In this document: positions 5,657 through 55,498 of the stretch, in pieces | Layout: every line of letters starts with the position of its first letter | How positions within the stretch are numbered: the first letter of the stretch is position 1 | Assembly (NCBI RefSeq): GCF_963921235.1 | Contig: NC_086124.1 | Span: 27,776,001 to 27,840,000 of the forward strand | Direction of reading: 5' to 3' | Length of the DNA stretch: 64,000 bases | Origin: Mobula hypostoma | Taxonomy: Eukaryota | The notes under the pieces: model-generated | Databases searched by the model: none | The model's input: only the letters and a program-made list of their open reading frames with translations | What the model was told of the DNA's origin: nothing | Program-made: the position numbers and the translations under genes

Positions 5657-5675
5657 TCACAAACGTTGGGAAACT
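5657..5675 (-). pseudogene. WA: WA-like cytoplasmic exon, coding part (R)VSQRL*
   Basis: Acceptor cctatttccctag precedes 5675. The phase-2 join to the TM exon gives ...LHK-R-VSQRL-TGA. An alternative acceptor before 5621 would give RRGGVCPGRFCSK*. Confidence 0.55.
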
Positions 5676-6104
5676 CTAGGGAAATAGGGGGATGAGAAGA
5701 TGGATCCGTGGTGGAACCAAAACAAGTGTCGGGGGATGTCAGGAGGTTGTTTTTACTGAGGTGTGGATGAGGATGTTTACACAGAGGCAGGAGATTGAAA
5801 TGGTAGAGCAGACTGGATGGGCCAAATGGCCTCATTTTCCTCCTATGCCTTATGGATGCATGGAAGTCGCTGTCAGGGGTGGTGGTGGATACATTAGGGG
5901 AATTTATGGAACTCTCAGACAGGCAAATGGATAATTGAAAAAATGGAGGGCAATGTGGGAGGGAAGGGTTAAATCGAAGTTGGAGTGGGTTAAGGGGTTA
6001 GTACAACATCTTGGGCTGAAAGGCCTGTACTCTGCTGTAATGGTTGATGTTCTATTTGGGGGACAAGGGGATGGATCCTTCGCAGAGATGAATGAGGTCC
6101 TCAC

Positions 6105-6216
6105 CTTTTGTGCAACGCTCTGCCCAGGTACAGTGTTACCAGCAACCCGATAACTCCCACTATGACTCCGACTGCACAGACAATAATCCCGGATGTGGGC
6201 ACAGGAGGAGGCAGAT
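6105..6216 (-). pseudogene. WA: WA-like connecting peptide and TM exon (intact, 112 nt)
   Basis: ctttaccccacag|...|gtgagg. Translates (D)LPPPVPTSGIIVCAVGVIVGVIGLLVTLYLGRALHK, with the class II alpha TM pattern C-x-x-G-x-x-x-G-x-x-G (compare HLA-DRA VVCALGLTVGLVG). Confidence 0.9.
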
Positions 6217-7621: not shown

Positions 7622-8300
7622 ATCGGTATTTACAGGGGGTCCCGCGGAGTGTGTCAGTATTTACCGGGGGTCCCGGGGAGTGTGTCGGTATTTACAGGAG
7701 GTCCCGGGGAGTGTGTCAGTATTTACAGGGGGTACCGCGGACTGCGTCAGTGTTTACAGGGGGTCCCAGGCAGTGTGTCAGTATTTACAGGGGGTCCCGG
7801 GGAGTTTGTCAGTACTTACAGGCGGTCCCAGGGAGTGAGCTGGTATTTACGGGGTGTCCCGGGGAGAGTGTTGGTGTTTACGGGGGTTCCCGGGGAGTGT
7901 GTCAGTATTTACAGGGGGTCCCGGGGAGCGTGTCGGTATTTACAGGGGGTCCCGGGGAGTGTGTCGGTATTTACAGGGGGTACCGCGGAGTGCGTCAGTA
8001 TTTACAGGGGATCCCGGGCAGTGTGTCAGTATTTACAGGGGGTCCCGGGGAGTGGGTCGGTATTTACAGGGGGTCCCAGGGAGTGTGTCAGTATTTACAG
8101 GGGGTCCCGGGGAGTGTGTCAGTATTTACAGGGGGTCCCGGGGTGCGTGTCAGTATTTAAAGGGGGTCCCGGGGAGAGTGTTGGTAATTATGGGGTGTAT
8201 CGGGGAGTTTGTCGGTATTTATAGGGGGTCCCGAGGAGTGTGTTGGTATTTACGGCGTGCCCTGAGCAGAGTGTTGGTATTTAAAGGGGGGTCCCAATGA
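7622..8300 (+). repeat. 31-bp GC-rich minisatellite, about 22 copies
   Basis: Unit about GGTATTTACAGGGGGTCCCGGGGAGTGTGTC; it explains the repetitive ORFs at 7568-8300. Confidence 0.95.
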
Positions 8301-8498
8301 GTGTGTCAGTAGTTCCAGGATCTTTGAACTTGTATCAGGATTTCAGGGGTCTCAGGAATGTTGATAAAATCTAACGGACAGTAAGGCTGTCAGGATTGAG
8401 AGGCCTTGATGTTTACAGTTTTGCTCCGTAACAGAAACCTTGGTTTTAGATACGTGACCCATGCTATTCTCTCCCTGTCGCTTTCCCAGCCAACATAC

Positions 8499-8781
8499 CT
8501 AGTGAGCACCTCAGCCCTTCTTCAAGGCTGACGTGTGCTGCCCGACAGCTGAATGTGTCCCCGCCCTTTGGCTCGATCCCAATGTACTTGCAGACGTTGA
8601 AGGTCCAGTCTGACTCCACCATCAGCTGCGATGATTGGACAGGCCCGGTGAACGGCTGCCTGTTGATCAGGAAGCTGAGCTCGATCTCAAATGGTTAGAA
8701 GTTCTCAGTGTAACACTACAAGGGTGTTCGACTTCTCTGGAGCATAGCCGTCTTCCGTCCAGATGTGGACGGTGGGTTTCT
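8499..8781 (-). pseudogene. WA: WA-like alpha2 exon, b2m-like Ig C1-set domain, disrupted
   Basis: gtgtcccag|...|gtatgt, 283 nt (282+1). Corrected frame reads KPTVHIWTEDGYAPEKSNTL*CYTENF*PFEIELSFLINRQPFTGPVQSSQLMVESDWTFNVCKYIGIEPKGGDTFSCRAAHVSLEEGLRCSL. Both Ig cysteines are present, and SQLMVESDWTF aligns with b2m SDLSFSKDWSF. Confidence 0.92.
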
Positions 8782-10116: not shown

Positions 10117-10389
10117 TTCTCAGGACGCTCGAACTGTTCGTGAACTTCAGCATCTCCTTAGTGATGTCCAGCTGCCAGATCTGGATCCCGGTCGACCTCT
10201 CCTTGAACTGGTTCACCTCATCTTAGCCGAGTTCCTTTACCCTGTCTGTCTCAATTCTCTTGATGAAGAAGGTCTGGCGCTGGTAATCGTGGAAAAGAAG
10301 GGGGGAGGTGTTCGCGTCGAAGACCTTGCCGTTGGTTTCGGAACTCGGGCTGTAGCTGTAATACAGCCTTTCAGAGATGCTTTTAAACA
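10117..10389 (-). pseudogene. WA: WA-like alpha1 exon (273 nt, one in-frame stop)
   Basis: ctttattccaag|...|gtgagt, phase 1/1. Reads VFKSISERLYYSYSPSSETNGKVFDANTSPLLFHDYQRQTFFIKRIETDRVKELG*DEVNQFKERSTGIQIWQLDITKEMLKFTNSSSVLR. It has a C-terminal N-glycan sequon (NSS), as MHC alpha1 domains do, and joins in frame to the alpha2 exon. Confidence 0.8.
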
Positions 10390-11050: not shown

Positions 11051-13423
11051 TACAGCAGCACATAAACTTAGTGGCTGTCGTGGAAATATTAACTGGGAGC
11101 ACCTGAGTGACCTTGAGTTTCGTTTTAAGAGTTTATTAACATGATAGCATGGAGGGCCTGCAGCAGTCTCCACCGCCAACAGAGCTCTAACTTTTAGGTT
11201 ATACATAGCTCACCATATACTACCCTGAGATTCATTTTCTTGCAGGCATTCACAGTTTTGTTGAGGCCCTCCGTTGGTCGGGGACAACTCTTATTGCATC
11301 CTAGCGGTCTACATGATATGCAAGCCAGGGCAGTCCGATATGGAGCACAAGCTGTTGCCCCTGTCGCAAGCTTCCCCTCTCCACGCAGCCGGGAATCCAA
11401 AGGAATGGCGGAGACCGATACAGTTTGGCACCAGCCAGTGTTACTCGTGTTGCCAATCAGCATTTAACTCAACGTGGGGACTCCAGCTCCGGATAATTCC
11501 TCGGAGTTTATTCCCGAAGCCTAGCCCATGACTGGGTATAGCCTCAAGGCAGCAGAGGTTTGAGGGCTTTCCTTCTGCAAGATGAGCTGCCAACCACATC
11601 TGCCTGAAGCGACTGGTTTTAAGGTGCCAGTCACCACCTTTGCCCCTTCTCCAATGGGTTTAGTAGCTAAGCCACACGTGAAAGCCAAGAGCTGGACCTG
11701 GTTGTCAGAGGCTATTGGAGGCGCACGCCATTGGGAGCATTTAATAGATAGTGAGAGCTTATTCCCACTACCTCTCCGGGCTATGAGAACTTTAAGGAAC
11801 CTAATGAAAAGCTACAAAGACTTACCAGCAACCAATGTGCAAAAAAGAAAAGTGTGCAAATGCAAAAAAAAGATATATTAGTAAATAAATAATACTGAGA
11901 ACATGTGTAGAGTGAGTCTGTAGGTTGTGGAATCGGTTCAGTGCGGAGGTGAGTGAAGTTCTCCACACAGTGAAGTACCCAGCATGCAGAGTCACACCCA
12001 AATAAACTAAATTCCATTCTTCATACTGTACAGCCCTTGCGGGAGGGACGCTGGCCAAGGACGTTTGCTCCTCTTTCAGCGAAGCCGAACTGTTGTTAGT
12101 CACTCAGGGACCAACAGACATACATTTGGACCAAACTCTGGCCATTCGGCCCATTGAGTCTGCTCTGCCATTCCATTGTGGCTGACTTATTATCCGTCTC
12201 AATCCCATTCTCCGGCCTTCTCCTCGTAACCTTTGACACCCTTGCTAATCAGGCCCCTGGTTTATATATACTCAATGACTTGGCGTCCACAGCCCCATCT
12301 GTGACAATGGATTCCACAGATTCATCACCCTCTGGATAAAGAAATTCCTTTCAATATCCAATAGGTTTCAGTGAGATCTCTCAAAAAACGTCGGACTGTC
12401 TTATGGACTCCAGCTCTGGATTTTCCCCTTGGGGTTTACTCTCCATGAGCGGGTATAGCCCCAAGGCAGCGGAGGTTTGAGATCAGAGTTTTCCTTCTCC
12501 TATACGAGCTTCCAATGACGGCCGATGAACCCCATCTGCCTGATGCAGAGGTAGTTCTAAAAACACAGACTATGGCGGGTGTGTGGAACACCCTGCCAGG
12601 GGCAATCGGAGAGGAAAATTCCTTAGAGACATTTAAGGAACTCAGATGGATGATAGAAACATGGAGGGTTACAGAGAAGAGAAGGGTTAGATTGATCTTA
12701 GAGTAGGTTAAAACGTTGCCACAAAGTTGTACGTCGAAGGACCTGTTCTGTTCTAAGTTCCATTTTCTATGTAAAGATGCTCACGATACTCCAGTTGCAG
12801 TCTGACCAATGCAGATTCAGGCATTGGTCAGACGACACTTGAAGTATCCAGGGAGCCCGAGTTCGATCCTGACCTGAGGTGCTACCTATGTGGAGTTTGC
12901 AAGCTCACTTTGTAAACACTTTGGCTTCTGCAGGATGCTCCAATGTCCCCTGCACGTCCCCAAGCTGTGTTAACGAGCCAATGTAGTATCACGGATCAAT
13001 ATTATTCACTATAGCTATCTGTTAGTCTCGTGAGACCATGGATTTGCGCCTTGGAAGGTCTCCAGGGCACAGACCTGGGTAAGGTTGTATGGGAGACCGG
13101 TAGACCCATGCTGCAAGTCTGCCCAAGTCACACCACCGATGTTATCCAAGGGAAGGGCACTGGAGCCGATGCAGCTTGGCACCGGTGTCGTCGCAGGGCA
13201 ATGTGTGGTTAAGTGCCTTGCTCAAGGAAACAACATAAAGTCATAAATACCAGCATGTATTTACAATGTAAACAGCATTATAAAATTGGTTTGAAGTGTT
13301 TGCAGTGCGGTGATGGAGTAATAGATAGAGGGGGTGGGGGAGGTAACTAGAATGGTTGATCAGATTAACTGCCTGGGGGAAGAAACTTTTAAGATGGCGT
13401 GAACGCTTTGTTTTAATAGCTGT

Positions 13424-16210
13424 AGAGTGCTTTCCACAAGAATAAATTACTGTTTTATTTCTATTCTGACATGTTCCAGCATCTGTGCAACGAACTTTGC
13501 TAATTCCCATGATGTTAATCTTTAGTCTTTCCATTTCATTTATCACATTGTCCAATCTTCCTGCTTGATATAGGGTTCTTACATTCCATTATAATGGGAT
13601 AGGAATTCTTATGGATGAAAACATGGTAAAAATTGTTTTAGGACATTGGACAATATCAGAAAGAGAGCTCCTTGTTAGATTCAGATTTAGCAGTTATACA
13701 GGTATATGGAACAAATGAGGATATACTGTAGATAAATTTGACGAAGAGCTTGAACAAGCAAAGAATGGATGCAAATCTCAAGATATAGTTATTGTCATGG
13801 GAGATCTAAGTGCTAAAGTAGGGCAAGGTGCAGATGGAAATACCATAGGAAAATTTGGACTAGGGAAAAGAAATGAAAGAGGTGAGAAATGGGTAGAATG
13901 GTGCAAGATAAATAATCAGGTCATTATGAACACCTACTTTAAAAACCATCCAAGACGCTTGTGGACCTGGAAAAGTCCAGGTGATAACACCAGAAATCAA
14001 ATTGACTTTGTTACTATAAACCAAAGATTTAGAAACTCAGTGACCCAATGCAAAACATATCCAGGTGCAGTCTGTAACAGTGACCATAACCCAGTAATAT
14101 GTCACGTAAAGGTAAAACTTAAAAAACTAAAGACGCAAAATCCTGAACAATCCCTTGACTGTTTCCTATTAATTAAAGAAGAAACATTAAGACAAAAATT
14201 TACAATTGAAGTAAGGAACAGATTTCATTGTCTAGAAATAGACTCTGTTGAAGATGATCGCCATCATGTAGAAATGAAGTTTAACTCTCCAAAGGATGCC
14301 TTGGTAGAATCAGCAAAGGCAGTGATTCCTAAAAAAAAGAATAAATGGATGACAGATGAAATCAAAAATCTATGGAATGAAGGAGACGGAATAAAGCAAA
14401 AAAAGTTATAAGTTTATGTCAAAAAGCCAAAGAAGAATGGTTAAACTAGAAATGTGAGCAGCTAGAAAGAATCCCTATTACTGATCCAAAAAGGTAACAT
14501 CAACAAATCAAGAATATCACTGGTAAAAAGCTCCTCTGTTCTTCAGGTGGATGTTTGAAAGCAAAGGACGGTACCATTATCATGCAAAAAGATGAGATTA
14601 TGAACAGATGGACTGAGTATATTCAGGAATTGTTTGAAGATGATCCAGAGGAAAAAACAGAAATTAAGAAGAACATGCAAGGTCCAAGTATTTTAAAATC
14701 TGAAGTTCGTAATGCAATAAATAAGATGAAGAAAGGTAAGGCGGCAGGTCCTGATGAATTAGTAATAGAACAAATTATCGCCCTTGGAGATTATAGAATT
14801 GAAAAACTTACTGATTTAATCAATGACATTTATCAGACTGGAATAATAACAGAAGAGATGATAAAATCTGTATTTATCACTCTCCCTAAAAAACCTGGAG
14901 CAATAGAATGTGAATTACATAGAACCATAAGTTTAATGAGTCATATCACCAAGATAATTCTAAGAATTTTGATGACAAGAGGTAAAAATAAGATACAAGC
15001 TGAAATAGGTAAAGAACAATGTGGTTTTGTGAAAGATAAAGGTACAAGAAACGCGATATTGATGTTAAGGATACTATCAGAACGAGCTATTCAAGTGCAA
15101 AAAGATTTGTTTGTTTGTTTTATTGACTGCACCAAAAAATTGATAAAGTAAAGCACAATAAGTTATTTGAAATATTACAGAAAACTCTAAATCTAGATTC
15201 AAAAGTCCTCCGCCTAATCAGAAATCTGTACTGGGAGCAAACTGCCGCTGTAAGAATAGATGGTGAAGTAACTCAGTTTACACAAATCAAGAGAGGCATT
15301 AGACAGGGGTGTGTTTTCTCCCCTGATTTGATTAATGTGTACAGTGAAACAATATTACAAAAAATGAGACGTCTTGGGAATCAAAGTTGGCAGTGAAAAC
15401 ATCAATAATTTCAGATATGCGGATGACATTATGTTAATTGCAAGTACTGAGGAAGAACTACAAAACTTAATTAATATAGTTGTTGAAGAAAGTGCAAAAA
15501 TGGGTCTATCTATCAATTGCAAAAAGACAGAATGTATGGTGATATCCAAAAAGAAGGAGAATCCTATCTGCAGGCTGAGAATAAATGGGGAAGACATAAA
15601 ACAAGTATATAACTTTTGCTACTTTGGAAGCTGGGTGACATCAGATGGCAGGTGTGACATGGACGTCAAAAGGAGAATAGGGATGGCAAAAGACACCTTT
15701 ACAAGAATGAAGAGTACACTGACCAATACTAAACTAGGCATGACAACCCGCTTCAGAGCACTGAAATGTTACGTTTATCCAGTTACGTTATGTGACTCAG
15801 AATGTTGGACAATATCTAGTAATATGAAGAAACGAATTGAAGCAGCACAGATGTGGTTTCTGAAGAGGATGCAAATAATATCATGGATGAAACGAATATC
15901 TAACGAGGATGTCATGAACAGAGCAAGCACAAAAAGAGAAATAATGTATGAGAACATGAAAAGGCAAGGTGCCTTCATTGTACATGTGATTCGGAAAGAG
16001 GAGTTAGAATGCACGGTAATTATGGGAAAGATTGAAGGGAAGAAAGCAAGAGGAAGACAAAGACAAATGATGATGGAGACAGCAGCCAGAGAACTGGAAA
16101 TGAATACCAATGAATTGATCCACTTGACCCGAAACAGGAATATGTGGGCCATGGCAGTCAAAGCTCAAACTGGGCTCGGCACCTGATGATGATGATGAGA
16201 GCGCTTTCCA
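13424..16210 (+). mobile_element. RTE-clade LINE (APE + RT, decayed) with inverted 5' segment, (TGA)n tail and 13-bp TSD
   Basis: ORFs 13797-14411 (APE: GDLSAKVG...NQIDFV...SDHNPV), 14555-15151 and 15374-16186 (RT: RYADD). Segment 13437-13590 encodes the APE N-terminus on the - strand. TSD AGAG(T/C)GCTTTCCA at 13424-13436 and 16198-16210. Confidence 0.92.
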
Positions 16211-19200
16211 GAGGGGAGTGTCCGCGATGATTTTTCCTGCACACTTCTTTGTCCTGGACACGCACAAGTCCTGCAGTGATGGTAAACTGCAGCCAATGCA
16301 GGGCACTGCCCTCGCAGTTCACTGTAGTTTTCGTCTACTGTGCGCGGATACAGTGAGATGATTGCTGTTTTCTTAGGAGGTTAAGGAAATTCTGCTCGTC
16401 ACTGACCATCCTAACTTCTGTCGAGAGTGTCCTGGCTGGTTACATCATGGCTTGCATGCGCAGGAATAGAAGGAGCTGCAGTATTAGTGGACTCAGGCCA
16501 ATGCATCACAGTCCCACCCCTTCTCACCATCAGTAGTGTTTGCCTCAGGAAAGCAACATCAAAGATTGCTGACCACTCAGGGCCACACCATCACTGCGCA
16601 GCTCCCATCGGTACAGGAGCCTGAAGTCCCACCCCACCAGGTTCAGAATCATCGACTTCCCTTCAACCATTCGGTTCTGCAACTGACCGGCACAACTCTA
16701 ATCACTACCTCGGTACAGTAACTCACCTTGATTACCGCTGGATCATGGTGTAGAAATATCTCTATTTTTCCCTTTCAGGGTTCTTTTGAAGACGCTGACC
16801 TGGAGTTACATGCTGACTTCAGTTCCTTGCGGGAATGGGACCCGCTCTCGGGGTCTCACGACTGGCCGTTATTCGTTATGCCAAGGACGCGGCCTAGAAG
16901 ACGCGCGAGCCTTCAGGGTTCTGGGATTTTGTGGCTCTGGAGGCGTGCGGACTCGAGGTCGGTGCCTCAGCAGGAATTTGGTGTGCCGTAGCAGCAGAGA
17001 GCTGGCTGCTAGCTGTGTGCCCAGAGACCCGAGATCTTTGGGCACAGAGCTCGGAAAAAGCGACGCAACAGACTTTTAACACCGTGAATCAGCGAGTGGC
17101 TTTGTTATGTCTCCTCTCTCGCTGTGAAACAGGGACATCTCTTTTTCCCTCATTTGGGAGAGAGAGAGAGAGCCCATGGTATGTTGAATACCGGGTGAAG
17201 GAGTAGTCTTTGGGCTACTACAAGTCTGTCTGTTTATTGATGCTTTGCTGTACGCTGGAGTGCTTGGTGAGGTGTGCAGCTGCTTTTTCGCTGGTGGGGA
17301 GGGGGTCATTGCTTTGCTGCTGCTTGTGCGTAGGAGGGGGAGCTGGGGGCGGGGCTTTGGAGTTCCTCCGTATTCGTTGATGTTTGCGAAGAAAAAGATA
17401 TTCAGGATTTATATTATATACATTTCTCTGACATTAAATGTACCTTTGAGAATTGCTACCTTTCTTGTATTTCCCTTGTAGTTTAACATTCTTGAGCTTG
17501 CCTTTTACATAATCACCTGTTCAGTGATTTTTCCAGCAATTACAGTATAGTGTTTCTCTATTTTTCTGGAAGCTTCTTATTTTGTCATGCCGCTTGAATC
17601 CAGCTATTTTTAGGTTGTTATCTCCAGTCTGAGTATGTCCTTTGTTCTATGGAATGCTGAAAGGCCTCGACAGAGTGGGTGTGGAGAGGATGTTTCCAAT
17701 GGTGGGGAGAGTCTAAGACCAAAGCACACAGCTTCAGATTGGAGGGGCATCCTTTTAGAACAGAGATGTGGAGCAATTTCTTTAGCCAGAGAGTGGTGAG
17801 TCTGTGGAATTTTTTGCCACAGGCGGCTGTGGAGGCAAACTCATTGGGTGTGTTTAAGGCAGAGGTTGATAGGTTCCTGATTAGTCAGGGCATGAAGACA
17901 GGAGACTGGGGCTGAGAGGGAAATGGATCGGCCATGGTGAAATGGCGGAGCAGACTCGATGAGCCAAATGGCCTAATTCTGCTCCAATATCTTATGGTCT
18001 TTATTAGGTATGCCTGCTTGATAATACAAATATCTAATCAGCCAATCGTGTGGCAGCAGCTCACTGCATTAAAAAGTATTTTTCATAAAAGTATTTCAAC
18101 ACACTGCTTTTCAAGATACTTTTTCGAACAAGCTAGTGTAAGTTTTCTTCTGTCCTGTTACACTGAAGGACTTTGAGTCAAGGCAAACTATTTATTTGAC
18201 TTTACCAGGAGTGACAGAAGGGTGTTGCAGGGTTGCCAGGGCTCCCTAGCTGTAGAGGAGAAAAGCTTAGATCAGATTATTTTGAGATTAAAAGCAAGTA
18301 ATGCTCAGGCTTTAGAAGGCATTGGTCAGACCACACTTGGAGCATTGTGAACAGTTTCAGGTCCCTTAGGTGTTGGCATTAGAGAAGGTCGAGAGGAGAA
18401 TGGTCCTGGGAATGAGAGGGTTAATAGATGAGGAGCATTTGATGGCTCAGGGATGTACTTGCTGGTGGTTAGAAGAATGATGGGGGATTCTCAATGACAC
18501 CTATTGAATATTGAAAGTCTTAGATAATGGATGTGGAGAGGATGTTTCCAATGGTGCAGGAGTCTAGGACCACAGGGCATAGAAGAAAAGAGACACTTTA
18601 GAACAGAGATGAGGAGGAATTTCTTTAGGCAGAGGGTGGTGAATCTGCAGAATTCATTGCCACAGATGACCGTGGAGGCAGAGTCACTGGGTGGATTTAA
18701 AGTGGGGGTTGATAGGTTGTTGTTTAGTAACGGCATTAACGGTTACGAGGAGAAGGCAGGAGAATGGGGTTGAGAGAGTAATAAAAAGGCCAATCGAATG
18801 GCAGAGAAAATCCGATGGGCTGAATGGCCAATTGGTCTTAAATCAGCCATTATTGTATGGAGACTCAATGGGCCCAATTCTGCTCCTCTGCCTTACAGTC
18901 TTATTGCCACCACTCAGCCAACTATGTAATGCAAGTCCCTTCAACATCAATAAGTTCCAAGTTACCCCCATTGACAAAGCACTCACCAATTTCCTCTCCC
19001 GTTACCATGGGAAATAGCAGGGCCATTAAGAAGCCGAAGAGGTCCATGTCTGTGGATGGCTCCTCTCTCCAGGAGCAATAAAAAGATGTGAACTGGGACT
19101 GTCCTGTTTATGAACGGGGCTTAGATTTTTGCTGACTACACAAGCCATGGTGAAGTAATTCAACTCCGCTGCTAGCGTGTCGATTTTATGAGTAACATTA

Positions 19201-23009: not shown

Positions 23010-23028
23010 CTGTTTCGCTCAGACGCAT
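23010..23028 (-). pseudogene. WA: Candidate WA first (leader) exon, 3' part
   Basis: Strong phase-1 donor ACAG|GTGAGT at 23010/23009, compatible with the alpha1 exon. The nearest ATG (23028) gives only MRLSET; the open upstream frame reads LEVIVGSLMRLSET without an ATG. Confidence 0.45.
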
Positions 23029-23054
23029 CAGAGAGCCCACTATTACCTCCAAAG

Positions 23055-41100: not shown

Positions 41101-44100
41101 CAGGCTATCAGAATGCTCTCTACGGTACAACTGTAGAAGTTCTTGAGTGTATTTGCTGACATGCCAAATCACTTCAAACTCCAAATTCTATCAGTCTGGT
41201 CCACGTACCATCAATCTAGAATATGTTCCATCAATCAGTCACCGCTGATTAACAGAAACCCTTTCTCCAGTCCTGCTGAAGGGTTTTGGCCCGAAATGTC
41301 GACTGTACTTTTTTCCATAGATGCTGCCTGGCCTGCTGAGCTCCTCCAGCATTTTGTATGGGTTGCTCGTATTTCTAGCATCTGCAGATTTTCTCTTGTT
41401 TGTGATTCAATAACTTGCAGTGTTCTGTTCTCCAATTCCTTCACAGCTCCTACCCATACCAGAGCCTTCATGCAGAAGAAACGGGGTCAAATGTACCTGG
41501 TGTGCACGGCCAGGAACTTCTTCCCCCGGGACATTAAAGTGCACTGGGTCAGAAACGGGGAAGTCGCTGACAATGGATCAGACACGACCAACGTTGTCCC
41601 TCAAAGCAATGGAGCCTTTCAAGTTAGGAGCGTCCGCCCCCTGGATGGAGACAGCTGGGGGTACGTCTGTCAGGTGGAACACGAGGCAGTTGATGGGAAG
41701 TTGCAGATACCTCTTGGTAAGAACAGCGAGTTGGGGAAATGTCGACTGATGTGATAAAAAACATTGATATCTACTTGATGACACAGAATCCCTCATCGTC
41801 CCTTTCTGTCCCCAAGTAAGTCCCAATAGCTTGAGACCTCTCTCATTGTCTATGCTACTGGCAATTATTATCATCAAGTCATACAGCTGAATACAAGGCC
41901 ATTCAGCCCAACACATCCATACTAACTAACAATCACCAGTACACACCGACTCTCCTCACTGAGGCTCATCCCCTTTTTTGGCGGAGAATCTTGTGAGATC
42001 CTGAGATTCTGAGAGCGATGTCGGTGGGAGCTTGGCTCCTGGTAGGGTCACCCATTGTGGTGAGGGTGGGGGGAGATTCCAGATAAGTGGCAGATGGAGT
42101 TTAACCCAGCTTGATGTGAGGTATTGCATCTTGGTAGGGCAAATGTAAGGCGACAGTACACCGTGTTGCTGAGTAGAGAGATCTTGGGATTCAAGTTCTT
42201 AGGACTTTGAAAGTGACTACACAGGTGGTTACGAAGGCTTATGGAATGCTTGCTTTTATTAGTCAAGACATTGAGTTCAAAGGTCAAGAGGTTATGTTGC
42301 ATAAACTCTGGTTAGGCCACATCTGGACTACCGCATACAGATCTCATCATCAGGAAAGATGTTGAGGCTTTGGAGAGGGTGCAGAAGAGGTTTACCAGAA
42401 TGCCGCCTGGTTTAGAGAGCATGTGCTATCATGGAAAGCTGGGCAAACTTGGGTTGTTTTCTCTGGAGTAGCAGAGGCTGAGGGGAGATCTGAGAGAGGT
42501 TTACAAGATTATGAGCAGCAGAGATGGAGTGGACGGGGGGGGGGGGATGAGTACCTGTTTCCCAGGGTTGAAATGTCTAATTCCAGAGGGCATGCATTGT
42601 AGGTGAGAGGGGCTAGGTTCACGGGGGATATGAGGGGTAGTGTTTTACTCAGAGTTGTGGACGCCTGGAATGCGCTGCCTGGTATGGGGGTAGAGGCAAA
42701 TACATTAGAGGCTTTTAAGAGATGTTTGGAGAGGCACATGGATGTAATGGAGATAGAAGGATATGGACATGGTATAGGTCGGAGGGATTAGTGTTTGATG
42801 TGCTTTTTAGTTGGTTCAGCACAACATTGTGGGCCAAAGGGCCTGTTACTGTACTGTCCTATGTTCTAAAGAGCATTTCAACTGAGATCTCAGTGGTGGA
42901 GCTGGCGGAAGATGATAACACATGGCAGCAGCAATGAAGGCGGGGGAAGGCTGCAGTGGTGAAGGATCCCCAGTCGTTTTGCATTCCAGGCCACGGGACC
43001 CTGACCCCGATCTGTCAAGGACCATGTGGTGGCTGCCAGTGCATCAGCCTCCCCACACAGAGCCACTCCTAGATGATCTCCTTTAGACCATAAGACAAAG
43101 GAGCAGAAGTCGGCCATTCGGCCCATCGGGTCTGCTCCACCATTTTATCATGAGCTGATCCATTCTCCCATTTAGTCCCACTCCCCCGCCTTCTCATCAT
43201 AACCTTTGATGCCCTGGCTACTCGGATACCTATCAATCTCTGCCTTAAATACACCCAATGACTTGGCCTCCACTGCTGCCCATGGCAACAAATTCCATAG
43301 ATTCACCACCCTCTGACTAAAAAAATTTCTTCGCATTTCTGTTCTGAATAGGCGCCCTTCAATCCTGAAGTCATGCCCTCTCGTACTAGACTCCTCCATC
43401 ATGGGAAACAACTTTACCACAACCACACTGTCCATGCCTTTCACCATTGGAAATGTTTCTATGAAGTCTCCCCTCGTTCTTCGAAACTCCAAGGAGTACA
43501 GTCCAAGAGCGGACAAACGTTCCTCACATGTTAACCCTCTCATTCCCGGAATCATTCTAGTGAATCTTCTCTGTACCCTCTCCAACGTCAGCACATCCTT
43601 TCTTAAATAAGGAGACCAAAAATGCCCACAGCACTCCAAGTGAGGTCTCACCAGCGCCTTATAGAGCCTCAGCATCACATCCCTGCTCCTATACTCTATT
43701 CCTCTAGAAATGAATGCCAACATTGCATTCGCCTTCTTCACTACCGACTCAACCTGGAGATTAACCTTAAGGGTATCCTGCACGAGGACTCCCAAGTCCC
43801 GTTGCATCTCAGAACTTTGAATTCTCTCCCCATTTAAATAATAGTCTGCCCGTTTATTTTTTCTGCCGAAGTGCATAACCATACACTTTCCAACATTGTA
43901 CTTCATTTGCCACTTCTCTGCCCATTCTTCCAATCTATCCAAGTCTCTCTGCAGACTCTCCGTTTCCTCAGCACTACCGGCCCCTCCACCTATCTTCATA
44001 TCGTCAGCAAACTTAGTCACAAAGCCATCTATTCCATAATCCAAATCGTTGATGTACAATGTAAAAAGAAGCGGCCCCAACACGGACCCCTGTGGAACAC

Positions 44101-47100
44101 CACTGGTAAATGTCAGCCAACCAGAATAGGATCCCTTTATTCCCACCCTCTGTTTCCTGCCAATCAGCCAACGCTCTATCCACGTATGTAACTTTCCCGT
44201 AATTCCATGGGCTCTTATCTTGTTAAGTAGCCTCATATGTGGCACCTTGTCAAAGGCCTTCTGAAAATCCAAATATACAACATCCACTGCATCTCCCTTG
44301 TCTAGCCTACCGGTAGAGAGAACAACTTTGAGAGAACAACCACTTGAGGGAACATCTTACTTGACTCGAGTGATTACCCTTCTACCAATTCTCTTTACAG
44401 GGATTTGGATCGTAGCCTCCTATGTCTTGCCAACTCAGATGCAATCGGTACAAAGTTATCGTCACTTGAATGAGCCAATCCCTCCTGCCTTGTGAGAAAC
44501 ACACGAGGGAAATTAAATTTTACAACAGTCTCATTGGAGACTGGATAATTTCCCCACCCCCAAGTGGAAATGGACAATGCTCCTGCTCTCCCCTCTCTAA
44601 CTCAAACACGTCTAGCACATCAGCCATCTTGTCAGCAGAATAAGAACCTAGAACCTAGTGGGACTAGGTGAGAGTAAGAGTTCGGCACGGACTAGAAGGG
44701 CCGAGATGGCCTGTTTCCATGCTGTAATTGTTATGTGGTTAAAATCAATCCAACCCTTCCCTTTCACAGAGCCCTCCATTTTACTATCATCTATGCGCCG
44801 ATTTAAGACTCCTAAATGCTCCTAATGTATCTGCCTCTACTACCACCCCATGCACAAACACTCTCTGTGTAAAAAGTCTCACCTCTGACACTCCCCTATA
44901 CTTTTCTCCAATCACCTTCAAGTTGTGCCTCCTCATAGTAGCCAGTTCCACCTTGGCTACTCGATCTAGGCCTCTTATCACCATATACGCCTCTACACCT
45001 CTTCTCCTCCTTTGCTCCAAAGAGAAAACCCTGAGATTGCTCAGCCTATCCTCAGAAGGTATGCCCTCCAATCTGGGCAGCATCCTGGTAAATCTCCTCT
45101 GCACCCTCTCTAAAGCTTCCACACCCCTTCAGTGTTCAGTGACTGGAACCGAACACAATACTCCAAAATTAAGATTATTGTGCATCATATTGAACTGAGT
45201 CACAGTGTAATCCCCTTGTCTGTGCAATTGTTTGCATCTCCCTATGGTTCAACACCAAACTGCGCTGAGACAGATTAACAGAGTTTTATTGTACATACAG
45301 ACACACCTAGGATGGTGGGGTGGATGTATGTCTCTGCCAAAGGAGGTGTGAGACAGTCCTTCCCTCTGCTAGTCTGCAGGTCACCCTTGGGCAAATGTAG
45401 CATCTGCTTAGCCCCCCGATCAGGGTCACGTGAAACCATGGGAGCAGGTGGTGGATGGTTGTGTGAAAAGCCAGTGCAGATCACAAGTCCTGGTTATGCA
45501 ACCACTGACACCAGGCAGACACTCTCTGAAGAGTACTGATAATGGCTGGGGTCACTCGTCTTGTAAAGACAATAAGAAACCGCTTCTGTAGAAATATTTG
45601 CCAAGAGCGATTGTGGTCATGAAAGGGCCATGATTGCCCACGTCATACGACACGGCACATAACGAACAGACAGTCCCATCAGAATTATTTTGGCATTAGA
45701 CGATACATTGGGGAACAGTGCTGCTAGATTTTCAGAAAAATTACCCAGACATCGCAAAATCTCCAACGTTTTCTCCTCAGAACACAACGCACTGGTTGAG
45801 AATGAAGATTTGATCATTGTTGGAGTTGTTCTGGGGGTACTCGGGCTGTGCGCAATGGTGGTGACTGGAAGCTTGTACTACTGCTCCTCAGAGGGTAAGT
45901 GGCTGCAAGACTTACAGAGAGACTCAGGGAACAGTCACCGGACTGTTTTCTGCTAAAGTGCTTCAAGAAAGGATCAAACTTGTTTTTGATGAACCACCGG
46001 GGAGCCACTCCCATGGAGCACCTTCTCTGGGTCCATCACCAGAGGCAGGGTTTCCCAGTGGCCACCCATTTCAATCCCACTTCCCATTCGGACTTCCTCC
46101 CATCTAGAGCGGAGAGCTGACCAGCTGCATCACGGCCTGGCGTGGAAACCCCAGTGCCCAGGACTGGAGAGGCCAACAGAACGAGGAGGATACAGCCCAG
46201 TGGTTCCTTAAGGTTGCCATAGCCGGGGTGGGCCAAGGTGGGGATGAGCTCCCACTACCCATTACGTGGCCTCAGTCATGGCGAAGACTAGGCCGGAAGC
46301 CACAGTGTCACCTGTTAGCAGCTGCCCAGGGGGAGTGTCCATGATGGGGTGTCTATGCTTGAGTCAGGGTTGCCATCCCCTCCCCCCTTTCCCCATCCCT
46401 CCTGCACATCCCCAGTGATTTTTGGACAGAAGACAAGCCATACTGTACTCGACTGCAGACTGCTGCAATGTTCATGGACCCAGGGGCTTGGACTACCCTT
46501 TTTGGGTGATTGTATTTTACTGCTATCTTACGGTACTGTGAAAAAGCCCTCGGCACGTATAGGCGCGGAAGACGTTTGCACGGTGGATTTGTCAATGTGG
46601 AGTGGACAGCGAGTTTGTAAATCTGGCGGGAGCAAAGGATGTTGGGAGTGGTGAGGGTGGCGTGTGGGACAGGTGGCAGAGAAGGAGTTGCCAGGGGAGG
46701 GAGAGGGGTGGCATGGATGCAGACACACCCAGCCCTGAGACACCAGGCAAGGTTATTTGATTCTAAACAATTGGTTTATTTATCATTACAGAACGACTCT
46801 CCTGTGCTTCCCGCTCCCTCCCCTCTCCCTTCCCCTTTCCCCAACCATGATTCCCCTCTCCCCGTCCCCTTCCCACTCTCACTCCACAATAGAGATCCAC
46901 ATCAGAATTATGAAATCATGTCATGAAATTATATTTTTTTGCAGCAATATATAAAATTACTACAGTACTGTGCAAATGTCTTAGGCACTCTAGCGATATA
47001 TATGAGTGATTCTTCAATTAGCGGCCCTTTTGACTACTTGAAATTCTGAAAAATGAAATTTCTGGAAACTCTGTTTGCTTTATATTATAATCTTTATTTT

Positions 47101-50100: not shown

Positions 50101-53100
50101 TGTGAACATTATCGGGACATGGGTGGAGTGGTGGTACAGATTCGATGAGCCAACTGGCCTCATTCTGCTCCTATACCTTATGGTATAACTTCTCCACACA
50201 GAAAGGGTGGTGGGTATACGAAACGAGCTGCCAGGTGATGCTGTAGAGGTGGCTACATTTGCAATGTCTAAAATGCATGGACAGGAAAGGTTTGGATCAA
50301 CGTTGGCCAAACACAGGCAAGTGGGACGAGCTTACATAGACAATTGGTTGGCATGGATGAGTGGGGCCAAAGGACCTGTTCCTATGGGATATAAATCTAC
50401 GACTCGATCGATGTATGGTTTATTTTTTTTTATATTTAGAGATACAACATGGTAACAGGCCCGTGCTGCCCAAATGCACCAAGTGACCAATTAACCTGCT
50501 AACCTGTATCTGTTTGGGTTTTGGGAGGATACCTGAGCACCTGGAGGAAACCATGTGGTCACGGGGAGAAGGTACAAACTTCTTGCAGACAGTGGCGGGA
50601 ATTGAACCCGGGTCACTGGCGCTGTAATGGCATTACATTAACCATTATGCCACTATGCCACTCCAGTGTAGCAAAGAGCTTCGTATTTTCAGTGCTAAAG
50701 GTAGGAAAATCTTTAAAAAAGCAATAATTTAGATGAAAGAAATTGACATTTTTGGTTGACGTATTGAACATAGAACAATGCAGGCCCTTACAGAAGTGAT
50801 CGAAACAAGAGATATCCAGACAGAGTGCAAAGTGGGAGGGTGTTCCCATTGTCAGCAGGGTCAAAGTTCAGAGGTCACATGGATACAACATAAGGAGAAG
50901 AGAATTCAGGAGAAATTTTTCCACATGGTGTGGTCAGAATCTCGAAGGCTCTGTCAGCAGGTGCGGTGGAGGTGAGCACCACTGGGGCTTTGGAGGGCGA
51001 ATTGGATAAGGACGTGTTAGAAAAATGTGCCGTGGGGAGATGGGGTGGAGTTGGGGAAGTTCTCTGGCAGAGAGCGGTCAAAGACATGATGGGATGGCAA
51101 GCCCTGTTTTTCTGCTGGAACTACTCTGATTTTTCTTTTCAGGCTTGTTGTCAACCATCTGATCTCTTGTTTCTCCCACAGGGGCAAAAGTGCTGAACTC
51201 TCAGCAGACAGGTGAGAAAAATCAATGCTGGTCTCGGGACGGGACGGGACGGGGGGGCACGGAAATCTCCAAAATGTCTATGTGGTGAAGGAACTTAGAT
51301 CAATATTACATTAGATTATGAGGACACGCAGTCCTCTTTTATTGTCATTTAGTAATGCATGCATTAAGAAATGATACAATGTTCCTCCAGAATGATATCA
51401 CAGAAACACAAGACAAACCAAAACTGAAAAACTGACAAAAACCACATAATTATAATATATAGTTACAACAGTGCAAAGCAATACCGTAATTTGATAAGAA
51501 CAGACCATGGGCACTGTAAAAAGAAGTCTCAAAGTCTCTAGAAAGTTCCATCATCTCACGCAGACAGTAGAAGGAAGAGAAACTCTCCCTACCATGAACC
51601 TCCAGCGCCGCAAACTTGCCGATGCAGCATCCTGGAAGCACCCGACCACAGCTGACTCTTGAGTCCGTCCGAAAACTTCGAGCCTCTGACCAGCCCTCCG
51701 ACACGGAGCACCGAGCACCATCACTGCCCAGCGCTTCGACCCCGGCCCCAGCAACAGGCAACAGGCAATAGGCAAAGCCGAGGATTTGGGGCCTTCCCTT
51801 CCGGAGATTCTCAATTGCACAGTAGCAGCGGCAGCGAAGCGGGCATTTCAGAAGTTACTCCAGTGTTCCTCCGCACTTCTTACGTCTGTCTCCATCAAAT
51901 CAGGATTGTGCACTGCCCCTAGTTACAAATACGATATCATTTCGGAGTGGCCGCGCGCGCTGCGTCACGCCGCCATCTTCTCCTCCCCTCCCCATACATT
52001 CGCTGGTATTCAGAAGAATGAGAGGGAATCTTATAGAAAGATGCATATAAAGTTATGAAAGGAGAAGATAAGACAGAGGCATAAGACCATAAGACAACGG
52101 AGCAGAATTAGGACATTTGGCCCATTGAGAGTCTGCTCCACCATTCCGTCACGGCTGATTTATTATCGCTCTCAATCCTGTTCTCCTGCCTTTTCCCTGT
52201 AACCTTTGGTGCCATTACTAATCAAGAACCTGTTGACCTCCATATTAAATATATGCGTGACTTGCACACATGGTGACGAAAAGTTTACATCCTTTGATGA
52301 TAATAAATTTGCTTTGAACTGGCACGGAGGAGAGGAGAGGAGGTGTGGGGTAGATCAGCCATGACTGACAGGGCAGAATTGAGGGGCCGAGTGGCCTACC
52401 TGTGCTCTTTGTCTTGATGTAATTGCCATGGGTGTCGGGGTGGAGATACATCTCTACCAACGGTGGTGTAAGGTGCTCCTTCCCTCCGCTGGCCGGCAGG
52501 GCACCCTTGGGCAAGGTGTAGCACCTGCTTAGCCCCCGATCAGGGTCCTGTGAAGCCATGGGAGCAGGTGGTGGACGGTCATATGAGCAACTGGCGCATA
52601 TCACAAGTCTTGGTTGTGTGACCACTGATGCCAGGCAGACAATCTCTGAAGCGTATTGGTGGGGCGGGGGGGGGTGGTCACCCGTCTTGTAAAGACACTG
52701 CCCAGAAAGCGGCAATGGCAAAGCACGTCTGTAGAAAAATTTGCCAAGAACAATCACGATCATGGAAAGTTCCACCTCATCTGACACAGCACATAACGAA
52801 TGAACGATTCACTTTGCAGGGCTCAGGAGGGCTTATTGCTAACCTGAGCCTTCTACTACAGCAGCGTGACCCTTCCAAGGGTCAAAGAGTTGTCACTGAT
52901 GAAGTTAAACTTTGAACCAACATTTCTTGCTCAGCCTCTTGTAAACAAGGAACAATGGAGTCCACGTTGGCCTAGTGATTGAAGAATAGGAATTTATTTA
53001 ATCTGTGGGACTCATTGCTACTGATGGCTGTGGAGACCAAACTTTGGGCATATTTAAAGTGGAGGTTTGATAGGTTGGGCATGTGGCCAAGTGGTTAAGG

Positions 53101-55498
53101 CATTTGTCTAGTGATTTGAAGGTTGCTAGTTTGAGCCTCAGCTGTGGCAGCATGTTTGTGTCCTTGAGCAAGGCACTTAACCACACATTGCTCTAGTGTC
53201 TGTACGAGGAGTGGCGCCCCACACAGACTTCCAATCTGCACCTCGAAAGGCATGAAAATGCCCGACACAGGCCTCTCATGGTCTGAGTCAACGTTCCCTC
53301 CCTCCCTCCCCGCCTTTGATAGGTTCTTGATTAGTAAGGGTGTCAAGACTGCAGCTAGCGGGGCACTATCTACGCCACCCCGAGCTACCTGCCAGCCTAG
53401 TCATCATATGGGAGCCCAAGCATGGGAGGATGAACCCTGGGCGCCCTCCCAAGACTATGGTCAACATGCTCCTGGAAGAGAGCGGCACGGCTAATGTAGA
53501 TGAACTGAACACACTGATGAAGGAGAGGGAGAAGTGGAGGGTTCGTCATCGTGCCTGATGCCGGCCCCTTAGGCCTGAGTGGACGTAGTAGTAGTAGTAA
53601 GGGCATCGAAGGTCACGGGGAGAATGGGGTTCAGAAGGATGAAAATCAGCCAGTTGGTCTGAAATCCTCTGTCTTATGGTGGTATGGTTTTATGGCAGGG
53701 TGTTGTTCGATTTCATGCCCTATGGCGCATTGGGCGGCATTTTTGGCGTTTCCGTAGCATTTGACTATTTTTTTGCGAGGCAGAGTTGGCGGCTCGACAC
53801 AGAAAGTGTGTAAAGAGCTGGCCGGATTTGAACTCAGGACCATTCGCCTCGAAGTCCAGTGCTGATGCCAGTACACCACTGGCCAGCTTTTATGGCAGGA
53901 TGATACAAGCCTAGGACAAGAGGGATCTTGGGGATACTTACCTCAGATAGGGCTTAAAGTTTTGACTTAAGTTTGGAGCTTAACAGCACACAATATCACT
54001 GCATCCTACAAGATGTCTGTTCTCTCTCTCTCTGTGCAGCAAAGTTCAATAACCAGCGGGGGCTGTGCCGGTTGAACACGTGCAACACGAGCGTTCGGTC
54101 CAGTGACTCTGGCGTCTCCAATTCCAGCGCCAGCTCAGGTACCAGTGTGCTTGTAAACCAGCCTACTCAGTGACCGGCTCCTCCAGTTCAGCCAAACCAC
54201 CATCACCGGCACTCACCCTCTTCAGCCTGCTCTCGAGATGGGCATGGAGGTTGACGGAGTTGGGGGGAAGTAGGGGTTGCGGATGAGGGGGAAGGAGGAG
54301 GAACTGGTTTCTACCTCAGTTTGTGGCAGCTGAGGGCCGGGGTGGGTAGGGTGCGAAGTGGACGGGGAGGGAAGAGAGGGTCAGGGAGGTGAAGGAGGAG
54401 GAGCTGGATTCCATGCTCAGGTAATGGTGTCTGGATGGTTGGGGGCGAGGAGGGGGAGGAATGGAGATTGATGGTGGAGGAGCTCATTCCCTACCCCAGG
54501 TAGTGGCGGCTGGGAGGAAAGGTAGAGGAGGCGATGGTTGGGGGGGAGAAGGAGCTCGTTCCCTCTCTCAGGTAGTGGTGGTTTGGTGGATGGAGGTGGA
54601 AGGGAGGGAGACAGAGGGGGTGAGGCGGAGATTGGGGGCTGGCTGAGTAAGTAGTGGCAGCTGGGGGGGTGGGGTAGAGGGCAGAGGGGGAAGAGGTGGA
54701 CAGGAGGGGAAGGTTAGCGGGGAGGGGTGGGAGTTTCTTCCCTCCTTCAGGTAATCCCAACTGGGGGGAGACGGGGAGGGGGACAGGTGGAGGGAGGGAG
54801 AGGTGGAGGGGAAGTTTGATTCCTACCTCTGTGTTGCTGGCTGGTTGGGGGGAGGAAGGGGGTGGTTAGAGAAGGGGGGAGAGGCTGATTTTCTACCTCA
54901 AGAATTGGAAGCTGGGTGGGCAGGGAAGGGGAGAGGTGGAGGAAGAGGACGAGCGGCTCTCTTCCTCAGATAATGGCTGATTGGGAGGACTGAGTGGGGG
55001 GCGGGTGATGGAGGTTACAACAAGGGGTTTGGGGATTTAGATCGGACCGCACTCTCCACCCACCCCACCAGCTTGTAGTCACGGTCAGGGGCCAGAGGCG
55101 GATGATGCTCCCGCTACCCCCCCCCGGTGTGGTCCAGCGGCCAAGGCACACTGCGCCAACGTCCAGAGGAGAGGGAGAGCTGGGGCGAGAGGGAGACCTT
55201 AACGCCTGCAGACTCCGGAGTCTGGAGCAACAAACAATCTGCTGGAGGAGCAGGACAGCATCCGAGGGAGGAAAGAGGTTCCTTGAAGTTTCGGGTCTCG
55301 GCTCAAAGCGCCAAGAATTCCTTTCCTTCCACAGATGCTGCTCAGCCGGTTGTGATCTTCCAGCACATTGTCTGTGGCTGAGGGAACAAGACTTCATCGA
55401 CCCTTTGCATCTTGCCCGTCTGTCGCGAGAGTTTCCGATCCACCGGCCATTGTATGTTCTTCTTTTCAGGTGATGGACTGACGAAACCTTCCTCTTAA
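23055..55498 (+). CDS. WB: MHC W-category beta chain (WB-like), about 293 aa; join(23055-23121, 25190-25462, 41447-41716, 45781-45894, 51182-51211, 54040-54138, 55470-55498)
   Basis: All junctions are GT-AG and phase 1. Summed length is 882 nt with no internal stop. Domain order is leader, beta1, Ig-C1, TM, tail, with class I-like YAYDG and PxxxGxFQ motifs in a class II-type two-domain chain. The three tail exons are less certain than the first four. Confidence 0.85.
23236..23275. promoter_or_regulatory. Two CCAAT boxes (ATTGG on +) flanking tandem GC boxes; candidate shared promoter element
   Basis: CAGATTGGGGGCGGGGGGCGGGGGGCAGGGGATTGGTT, in a CpG-rich patch about 210 bp upstream of the candidate WA first exon and inside WB intron 1. 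Confidence 0.5.
24009..24553 (-). mobile_element. Internally deleted hAT-like element (545 bp) with BED-finger remnant
   Basis: Perfect 13-bp TIRs CAGACATCCCACC / GGTGGGATGTCTG. The - frame has KYKT...YPCL...ARCTVCNSDFSIAHGG. No clear 8-bp TSD. Confidence 0.7.
24554..25146 (+). repeat. 40-bp minisatellite, about 15 copies, two interspersed variants
   Basis: ACAG(A/G)CCCACCCTCTGGGTAAAACGAT followed by CCCTGTGGTGT(A/G)T or ACCCGTGAAATAT. Degenerate units continue at about 23890-24008. Confidence 0.95.
25190..25462 (+). CDS. WB: WB-like exon 2, beta1 membrane-distal domain (273 nt)
   Basis: gcttcttttag|...|gtaaga. Reads DMHLFHVQCECLFRGLEVDDIRLRYAYDGVTIMYYN...ESICDEIKQAVRSSNITLENM, with a Cys11-Cys74 pair and an NIT sequon. 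Confidence 0.9.
26040..26630 (+). mobile_element. Penelope-like element, 3' fragment (related pieces at about 1-360, 34190-34750, 41270-41400, 60680-61290)
   Basis: Decayed GIY-YIG C-terminus (EEHYLIF...QPDGMN) followed by the pyrimidine-rich tract and the GATGCTGCCTGACCTGCTGAGTTCCTCCAGC-type end shared by all copies. Confidence 0.65.
29340..29975 (-). mobile_element. I-clade (Nimb-like) LINE fragment with RNase H and C-terminal Cys/His motif
   Basis: The - strand reads ICSDSAAA...FSWIPGHAGVEGNEIVD (RNase H) and RLRLGHCGLN...CDCGSPETVQHVLLSC. Confidence 0.8.
30827..34940 (-). mobile_element. hAT DNA transposon, both ends intact (4114 bp), decayed transposase
   Basis: 16-bp TIRs CAGGGG(C/T)GCAGTGCTA and 8-bp TSD GGCCCAAG (30819-30826, 34941-34948). 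Transposase pieces: FSVLIDES, SDGASVM, WHCLNHRLELAV, PISTAECERGFS. Confidence 0.95.
33705..34025 (-). mobile_element. Tigger/pogo-like transposase fragment (CENP-B-type HTH) inside the hAT element
   Basis: LLKSGTSLAEVG...EKALSVWLEDVSQKHIPVDGKIMREK. Confidence 0.7.
35385..36740 (-). mobile_element. Penelope-like element, RT C-terminus plus GIY-YIG endonuclease, decayed
   Basis: The - strand has YIDDCIGAASC (RT) and CGLLYIGEICRRLGDCFAKHL...HLIFHLGSLQPDGMNIDFS. Confidence 0.85.
36895..37455 (+). mobile_element. Rex1/Babar-type LINE, 3' end with (TAAAGTA)n tail
   Basis: HITQTNLPSLDSLHTARCRSSAARIIKDTTHP...LPSGRRIRSLKTRTARFGNSFFP, tail ATAAAGTATAAAGTATAAAGTA. Confidence 0.75.
37640..38660 (-). 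mobile_element. Gypsy pol remnant (RT and RNase H start)
   Basis: GSVRICGDFKVTIN...YPLPRMEDIF...FSKVDL...RCYLDDIIVTG. Confidence 0.9.
40570..41175 (-). mobile_element. Rex1/Babar-type LINE, 3' fragment (similar copy at about 55830-56440)
   Basis: FYSCTVESILIACITVWYGGATAQDRKKLQKVV. Confidence 0.7.
41447..41716 (+). CDS. WB: WB-like exon 3, beta2 Ig C1-set domain (270 nt)
   Basis: ttccttcacag|...|gtaaga. Reads APTHTRAFMQKKRGQMYLVCTARNFFPRDIKVHWVRNG...VVPQSNGAFQVRSV...YVCQVEHEAVDGKLQIPL, with canonical C-W-C. Confidence 0.95.
43085..44310 (-). mobile_element. CR1-clade LINE, 5'-truncated, with open 371-aa RT ORF (43172-44287)
   Basis: DVVYLDFQKAFDKVPH...[13 protein letters not shown]...FADD...LVRPHLECC. 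Many shorter CR1 pieces occur elsewhere. Confidence 0.95.
45781..45894 (+). CDS. WB: WB-like exon 4, connecting peptide and TM (114 nt)
   Basis: ttttctcctcag|...|gtaagt. Reads EHNALVENEDLIIVGVVLGVLGLCAMVVTGSLYYCSSE, with class II beta-type spaced glycines. Confidence 0.92.
47004..49060. mobile_element. Unclassified 2.06-kb AT-rich TIR element inserted in a palindromic Tc1-type MITE (46961-47003 and 49061-49090)
   Basis: Imperfect 20-bp TIRs GAGTGATTCTTCAATTAGCG / rc GGGTGATTCCTTAATTAGAG (16/20). Host halves are TACAGTACTGTGCAAATGTCTTAGG and CCTAAAACTTTTGCACAGTACTGTA. Confidence 0.65.
51182..51211 (+). CDS. WB: WB-like exon 5, cytoplasmic micro-exon (G)AKVLNSQQT
   Basis: ctcttgtttctcccacag|30 nt|gtgaga, phase 1/1. 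Confidence 0.6.
53075..53320 (+). mobile_element. tRNA-derived SINE with CORE/V-like central domain
   Basis: Head GGGCATGTGGCCAAGTGGTTAAGGC and central GTGTCCTTGAGCAAGGCACTTAACC. Confidence 0.6.
53345..53598 (+). mobile_element. RTE-like LINE, 3' end with (GTA)n tail
   Basis: RLQLAGHYLRHPELPASLVIIWEPKHGRMNPGRP, then GTAGTAGTAGTAG. Confidence 0.65.
54040..54138 (+). CDS. WB: WB-like exon 6, Ser-rich cytoplasmic exon (99 nt)
   Basis: tctctctctctctgtgcag|...|gtacca. Reads (A)KFNNQRGLCRLNTCNTSVRSSDSGVSNSSASS, phase 1/1. Confidence 0.7.
54250..55010 (+). repeat. G-rich degenerate tandem array (about 9 units of 70-100 bp)
   Basis: Recurrent core about GAGCTC(A/G)TTCCCT(A/C)CCTCAGGTAGTGG, separated by GGG/GAGG tracts. 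Confidence 0.65.
55470..55498 (+). CDS. WB: WB-like exon 7, last coding exon (G)DGLTKPSS*
   Basis: gttcttcttttcag|GTGATGGACTGACGAAACCTTCCTCTTAAG|gtaaaa; the stop lies 1 nt before a donor. Confidence 0.6.

Follow-up and report, generated by a model that had tools for sequence, protein, structure and literature searches.

A head-to-head W-category gene pair of the major histocompatibility complex in the ray Mobula hypostoma, with an intact WB gene and a predicted WA pseudogene

A 64,000-nt stretch of the genome of the ray Mobula hypostoma (NCBI RefSeq assembly GCF_963921235.1, contig NC_086124.1, positions 27,776,001 to 27,840,000; hereafter the window) very probably contains a single head-to-head gene pair of the W-category of the major histocompatibility complex (MHC). 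We put the probability at about 0.85 that this pair is of the WA_DS5-like / WB_Nds5-like type, with an intact beta-chain gene (WB) and an alpha-chain gene (WA) that has become a pseudogene. The two genes diverge from each other, with the alpha ATG at 19047 on the minus strand and the beta ATG at 23055 on the plus strand (all positions are those of the window). This pair type has already been described, in sharks and in fragments from little skate (Okamura et al. 2021, PNAS, PMC8713811); the locus adds a member, in a new host, to a known family and is not a discovery. An original prediction, made from the letters of the window, had named two divergent two-domain genes forming a W-category pair in a probable ray genome. 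The W-category assignment is upheld by hallmark residues, by matches to the published Datasets S1-S3, by the WA relatives of the alpha chain and by a domain tree, and the ray by a beta gene that is 100% identical to an NCBI M. hypostoma protein. All the exons it described are present and the beta gene is complete, but the alpha gene is not open, being interrupted by a TAA, an insertion, a TAG and a second TAA.

The defining features of the W-category were taken from Okamura et al. 2021 (PMC8713811). Both chains have a class II-type organization with one exon per domain, consisting of a signal peptide, a domain distal to the membrane, an immunoglobulin (Ig) C1 domain, and a connecting peptide, transmembrane (TM) and cytoplasmic region. 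In particular, when aligned with 22 WA sequences, the alpha2 domain contains the name-giving W61 (ESDWTF) and L55, and has F37 (ELSFL) in a column that is W in Ig domains and in class II alpha chains. The beta2 domain contains P57 and G61 within VVPQSNGAFQ, compared to VVPSGDGTYQ in class I and LLQNGDWTFQ in class II, and beta1 carries the class I alpha2-type residues A32 and G35 (YAYDG). Further, in Datasets S1-S3 (Okamura 2021, PMC8713811), the rows that match alpha1 and alpha2 are WA DS5-like, and those that match beta1, beta2 and the beta TM region are WB Nds5L; the latter match includes a 4-residue deletion in beta2 that is common to WB Nds5L and explains a beta2 exon of 270 nt.

Database searches and phylogeny place the two chains in the same way. 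The distal 65 residues of alpha2, searched against 1.84 billion representative proteins, returned elasmobranch WA_DS5-like proteins first, followed by clusters with the deposited Ambystoma WA_02 and Danio WA_01/03; Triakis sequences were also among the named relatives. Searching solved structures with the intact alpha2 domain of Hemitrygon returned beta-2-microglobulin first (E down to 3e-22) and then class II beta chains, with no class II alpha chain among the best 60 matches; the corresponding search with beta2 was uninformative, its output being taken up by antibody constant domains. A tree of 43 Ig-like domains built by maximum likelihood, in which class II alpha2 and class I alpha3 have a single representative each and beta-2-microglobulin has none, placed the M. 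hypostoma alpha2 next to that of M. birostris within WA_DS5L (100/97), and united all WA domains, including those of Ambystoma and Danio, in one clade (98/95) that excludes the single class II alpha2. The M. hypostoma beta2 lies next to its M. birostris counterpart within WB_Nds5L (100/99), a group that joins the class I alpha3 domain rather than class II beta2 (99/85, long branches). Neither domain grouped with class II, in agreement with the predicted W-category identity.

A conventional MHC class II alpha/beta pair, classical or nonclassical, is what the automatic annotation implies. Such a pair would share the class II exon layout, the class II-type glycine motifs of the TM regions and the head-to-head arrangement found here, and the NCBI name of the beta gene is a class II name. 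However, beta2 has G at the W61 that is invariant in class II, and alpha2 has F at the invariant W37 as well as a W61. On beta1, the Pfam model MHC_II_beta scored 14.5 bits, below its cut-off of 20.9, in a tie with MHC_I (14.9 bits); the weak matches of beta1 fall on class I alpha2 as well as class II beta1 domains. The Pfam model MHC_II_alpha had no match to the alpha1 pieces. With both domains also set apart from class II in the tree, a conventional class II pair is extremely improbable.

The WB gene has seven exons on the plus strand (23055-55498) that total 882 nt, or 293 codons and a stop. The NCBI M. hypostoma protein P0001 (293 aa), found by a search with the beta2 exon at 100% identity, maps onto it without mismatch. 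Exon 1 (23055-23121) carries the start codon and signal peptide, ends in a phase-1 donor, equals residues 1-22 of P0001 (100%), and is covered by RNA contigs. Exon 2 (25190-25462; 273 nt) encodes beta1 with the motifs HLFHVQCEC and YAYDG, is 100% identical to P0001, and is supported by RNA and by the WB Nds5L rows of Dataset S1. Exon 3 (41447-41716) encodes the beta2 Ig-C1 domain, supported by Pfam C1-set (E=8.7e-16), RNA and the tree; exon 4 (45781-45894) encodes the connecting peptide and a TM region with GxxxG (GVVLG), which matches P0001 at 100% and the WB Nds5L rows of Dataset S3. The cytoplasmic exons 5 (51182-51211; 30 nt) and 6 (54040-54138) map exactly to P0001 with AG/GT borders, and exon 7 (55470-55498), also mapped exactly, contains the C-terminus and a TAA stop. 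This exact mapping bears out the originally proposed 273-nt beta1 exon, Ig-C1 domain, Gly-spaced TM region and gene end at 55498. The product would be a type I membrane chain that combines a class II beta layout with class I-type interdomain residues.

The locus had also been suspected of being unannotated or mislabelled as class II. The second half of this suspicion holds, since NCBI names the WB product 'SLA class II ... DQ haplotype C beta chain-like'; the M. hypostoma WB is already annotated, and it is alive but mislabelled. Its orthologues are named variously as class II-, class I-, FcRn- or zinc-alpha-2-glycoprotein-like, and automatic annotation thus spreads W genes across all of these labels. 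For example, the M. birostris WB model (P0002; 172 aa, 'FcRn large subunit-like') begins only in beta2. The M. birostris WB leader and beta1 exons are intact on the minus strand (L002:3870-4142 and 5954-6026), and the public model looks under-called. The beta introns themselves contain several further features: a minisatellite in intron 1 (24554-25147; 15 copies of 40 nt) that creates long spurious open reading frames (ORFs), retroelement reverse-transcriptase ORFs identified by Pfam on the minus strand (38081-38491 and 43172-44287), and, in intron 2, a run of long minus-strand ORFs (31355-33678; 127-203 aa) with no Pfam match, possibly a decayed transposase.

The WA gene has five exons on the minus strand, running from 19047 to 5582. 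Exon 1 (18987-19047) contains the start codon and signal peptide followed by a GTGAGT donor; this leader was recognized as an ATG, a hydrophobic stretch and a candidate GTGAGT, and in alignments it coincides with the start codons annotated for the orthologues in M. birostris (P0072; L002 10001) and Hemitrygon (L001 5831). Exon 2 (10117-10389; 273 nt) encodes alpha1, matching the WA DS5-like rows of Dataset S1, and exon 3 (8499-8781) encodes the alpha2 Ig-C1 domain with F37, L55 and W61, supported by a Pfam C1-set match to its distal piece and by the tree. Exon 4 (6105-6216) encodes the connecting peptide and a TM region with the pattern CxxGxxxGxxG, contains IVCAVGVIVGVIG, and shows 3 differences to M. 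birostris over 131 nt. Exon 5 (5582-5621), homologous to the last exon of P0072, encodes the cytoplasmic tail and a TAA stop. The alpha1, Ig-C1 and TM exons are thus found as originally described. Two other details of that description have to be corrected: the coding sequence ends at 5582 and not at 5657, and the leader does not sit next to the beta leader, where a minus-strand GTG ORF (22990-23280) had been the candidate, because the orthologues' start codons place it at 19047.

Four lesions interrupt this gene in the assembly. The alpha1 exon contains an in-frame TAA (10225-10223). The alpha2 exon has 283 nt instead of 282, due to a single T inserted near 8720, and, when read in its ancestral frame, contains a TAG (8718-8716) and a TAA (8697-8695), each in place of a conserved Tyr codon. 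As read from the assembly, the M. hypostoma WA would be a pseudogene. In both M. birostris (L002) and Hemitrygon akajei (L001), the alpha1 site is CAA, the insertion is absent, and both Tyr sites are TAC; their WA genes are annotated as products of 255 and 254 residues, respectively, and in Hemitrygon both the alpha1 and the alpha2 exon give a clean translation. Because the lesions are absent from both syntenic orthologues, the inactivation of WA probably postdates the split from M. birostris. Moreover, substitution rates (Nei-Gojobori) indicate that the alpha gene was constrained on the M. birostris branch (nonsynonymous rate dN 0.004, synonymous rate dS 0.091) and unconstrained on the M. hypostoma branch (dN 0.087, dS 0.062).

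The orthologous loci are collinear with the window and have the same exon borders, with DNA identities of 91-96% for M. birostris (WA, P0072; WB, P0002) and ~82-85% for Hemitrygon akajei (WB, P0003, and the 254-residue neighbour); this synteny, with WA open in both species, agrees with the predicted pair. The head-to-head arrangement is likewise found in Hemitrygon, M. birostris and Hypanus. The 4,007 nt between the divergent ATGs of M. hypostoma (19048-23054) are conserved with M. birostris and Hemitrygon in both the collinear alignments and a promoter-region alignment. Conservation between Mobula and Hemitrygon is strong directly upstream of both ATGs (22720-23054 and 19048-19330). On the alpha side, about 7 kb of intron 1 (11618-18741) are absent from Hemitrygon and mostly common to M. 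birostris, and they include reverse-transcriptase ORFs (13797-16186). Intron 3 contains a minisatellite (7626-8319; 22 copies of 31 nt), an array also found in Hemitrygon (L001 ~1010-2813), which gives rise to spurious long ORFs. A DDE_3 transposase fragment was identified by Pfam near the start of the window (1602-2000, minus strand).

The beta gene is expressed. Four M. hypostoma RNA runs, aligned to 22000-25700, contain the complete beta1 exon (share 1.00), and each yields one contig of 2.06-2.29 kb whose 5′ end lies at 22962-23027 and which carries exons 1 and 2 mismatch-free. In the contigs of all four runs, 23121 is joined to 25190, so that 23122-25189, bordered by GT..AG, is skipped; the RNA depth within intron 1 is ~0 outside its repeats. 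A search of the runs with a 4.7-kb intron-rich stretch gave repeat-level shares only. The contig from run X3 extends beyond 25462, and its next 30 letters equal 41447-41476, which gives the junction between exons 2 and 3. Two splice junctions are thus directly shown, and the proposal that the exons belong to one transcript is borne out for these three. Further, compared with M. birostris, the WB exons are 97.1% (beta1), 98.5% (beta2) and 98.2% (beta TM) identical, whereas the flanking DNA is ~93-96% identical. The ratio dN/dS between the two species is 0.32 (Nei-Gojobori), with about one nonsynonymous change on the M. hypostoma branch. Overall, WB is transcribed, spliced as annotated, and under purifying selection.

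These results bear on what becomes of a beta chain whose neighbouring alpha gene is dead. Okamura et al. 2021 (PMC8713811) showed a WA/WB heterodimer at the cell surface for the tiger salamander only, where glycan maturation and surface expression of either chain depended on the other. Because of this interdependence, and because the neighbouring WA appears dead, the Mobula WB would have to pair with another WA, presumably one encoded elsewhere in the cluster. The same two facts could instead mean that both genes are on their way out, with WB still expressed as a relic, its partner gone but its own sequence so far free of lesions. However, exons that are better conserved than their flanks, the low dN/dS and the near absence of nonsynonymous change on the M. 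hypostoma branch, and the correct splicing in four RNA runs all speak against this, and we regard the loss of both genes as improbable. A constrained WB beside a dead WA would be a naturally occurring example of a W beta chain outliving its neighbouring alpha chain, and useful for judging how strict WA/WB pairing is.

Several points weigh against the identification of the locus as a W-category pair with a living WB and a dead WA. Position 57 of alpha2 is V, where the W-category feature is F/Y57; the same V occupies this position in all DS5-like sequences, among them those of Triakis that are named 'MHC class II alpha chain like protein'. The W-category Y8 of alpha2, which is the partner of beta2 P57 (PMC8713811), is replaced by W (HIWTED), compared to Y in each of the 22 other WA sequences, those of both orthologues among them; by alignment, this W8 would be a derived change in the pseudogene. 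Beta1 has T37 and H6 rather than D37 and Q6, as do the published Nds5L rows. Because class II alpha2 and class I alpha3 are each represented once in the tree, and beta-2-microglobulin not at all, the tree demonstrates WA and WB membership and not deeper relationships. The pairing of WB with another WA is extrapolated from the salamander experiment. The lesions are read from the assembly, and they could belong to a null allele carried by one haplotype, or have arisen as a consensus artefact in a multicopy family. Finally, the alpha exons show an excess of substitutions, limited to exons, for which simple decay does not account.

The last two points could be explained together by a WA gene that is functional in the species, with the four lesions being an assembly or consensus artefact from paralogous reads, or a null allele of the sequenced haplotype only. 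The reads were aligned only over the beta gene, leaving the assembly as the source of the lesions, and exons, to which the excess divergence is limited, are the sole parts common to paralogues. However, there are four independent lesions together with ~27 amino-acid replacements, many of them at residues invariant in 22 WA sequences, the inserted T lies outside any long homopolymer, and, at 90% identity, the cluster of the M. birostris orthologue contains no protein from M. hypostoma. We therefore consider a functional WA to be unlikely, and retain its reading as a pseudogene.

The excess itself is large. With changes polarized by Hemitrygon as outgroup, the alpha1 and alpha2 exons (556 nt) have accumulated 40 changes on the M. 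hypostoma branch versus 12 on the M. birostris branch, and are 89.4% (alpha1) and 91.5% (alpha2) identical between the two species. On the same M. hypostoma branch, there are 24 changes across 1,763 nt of flanking introns (1.4%) and 102 across 5,811 nt of all non-coding blocks. The two exons have consequently changed 4-5 times more than their own introns (Poisson P ~1e-13 or lower; Fisher p = 3e-6), which rules out simple neutral decay as the full explanation. The rate is raised at both synonymous and nonsynonymous sites, some of the changes are clustered, and the alpha TM exon is unaffected. CpG decay covers just 7 of the 40 changes, and, given the raised dS, positive selection is unlikely to be the sole cause.

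Our best guess is gene conversion limited to the exons, with an old, dead copy as the donor. Support for conversion in this gene family comes from Hypanus sabinus. In that species, an unannotated second WA_DS5-like copy (L004:4028-5458, minus strand) stands head-to-head with a WB named 'zinc-alpha-2-glycoprotein-like' (P0004). Apart from a deletion of ~28 nt, its alpha2 is nearly identical to that of the other Hypanus WA, its alpha1 is very different and belongs to a different lineage, and the copy looks like a case of concerted evolution of one exon. Conversion from this second WA_DS5L lineage, with the Hypanus copy as its proxy, is not supported as the source of the M. hypostoma changes, since that copy has 0 of the 14 derived sites in alpha2 and 4 of the 23 in alpha1. 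A profile search for WA returned no M. hypostoma WA protein. An assembly artefact from paralogous reads is another possible explanation of the excess. More speculatively, a long-dead WA copy, either a genomic paralogue or a processed pseudogene, may have overwritten the two extracellular-domain alpha exons and no others, while WB remains selected and pairs in trans with the WA of a neighbouring pair. We hold this combined account as a tentative and somewhat doubtful one; if true, the overwritten exons and the pairing in trans would amount to a re-sorting of partners after tandem duplication.

The locus extends a sparse record. So far, the W-category in batoids comprised little skate only, with WA DS5-like, WA DS10-like, WB DS1-like and WB Nds5L sequences, several of them partial, including WB Nds5L (PMC8713811). 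In the great white shark, three head-to-head pairs have been found, one of them WA_DS5L/WB_Nds5L (supplementary information of Okamura et al. 2021, PMC8713811). Two later papers touch on the W-category in passing, and within the literature searched no paper on the Mobula MHC was found. The present analysis adds, from a myliobatiform ray, a fully resolved, RNA-supported WB_Nds5-like gene model and what appears to be its dead WA_DS5-like partner, and it leaves the current view of MHC class origins unchanged.

Compared with the shark WA_DS5-like / WB_Nds5-like genes (PMC8713811), the Mobula pair has the same head-to-head WA/WB arrangement, the same class II-type exons, and near-identical alpha1, alpha2, beta1, beta2 and TM motifs, down to the 4-residue beta2 deletion, F37/L55/W61 in alpha2 and P57/G61 in beta2; it differs in its myliobatiform host and in a WA that appears dead, with Y8 changed to W and several invariant residues replaced. 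Like conventional class II, it has two chains, each domain on an exon of its own, a divergent gene pair and glycine motifs in the TM regions, whereas class II has W37 in alpha2 and W61 in beta2, lacks the beta-2-microglobulin-like W61 in alpha2, and clusters apart from the domains found here. Its alpha2 resembles beta-2-microglobulin, its beta2 has the P57 and G61 of class I alpha3, and its beta1 carries the class I alpha2-type AYDG motif; in contrast to class I and beta-2-microglobulin, these domains are split over two membrane-anchored chains, with neither a three-domain heavy chain nor a soluble light chain.

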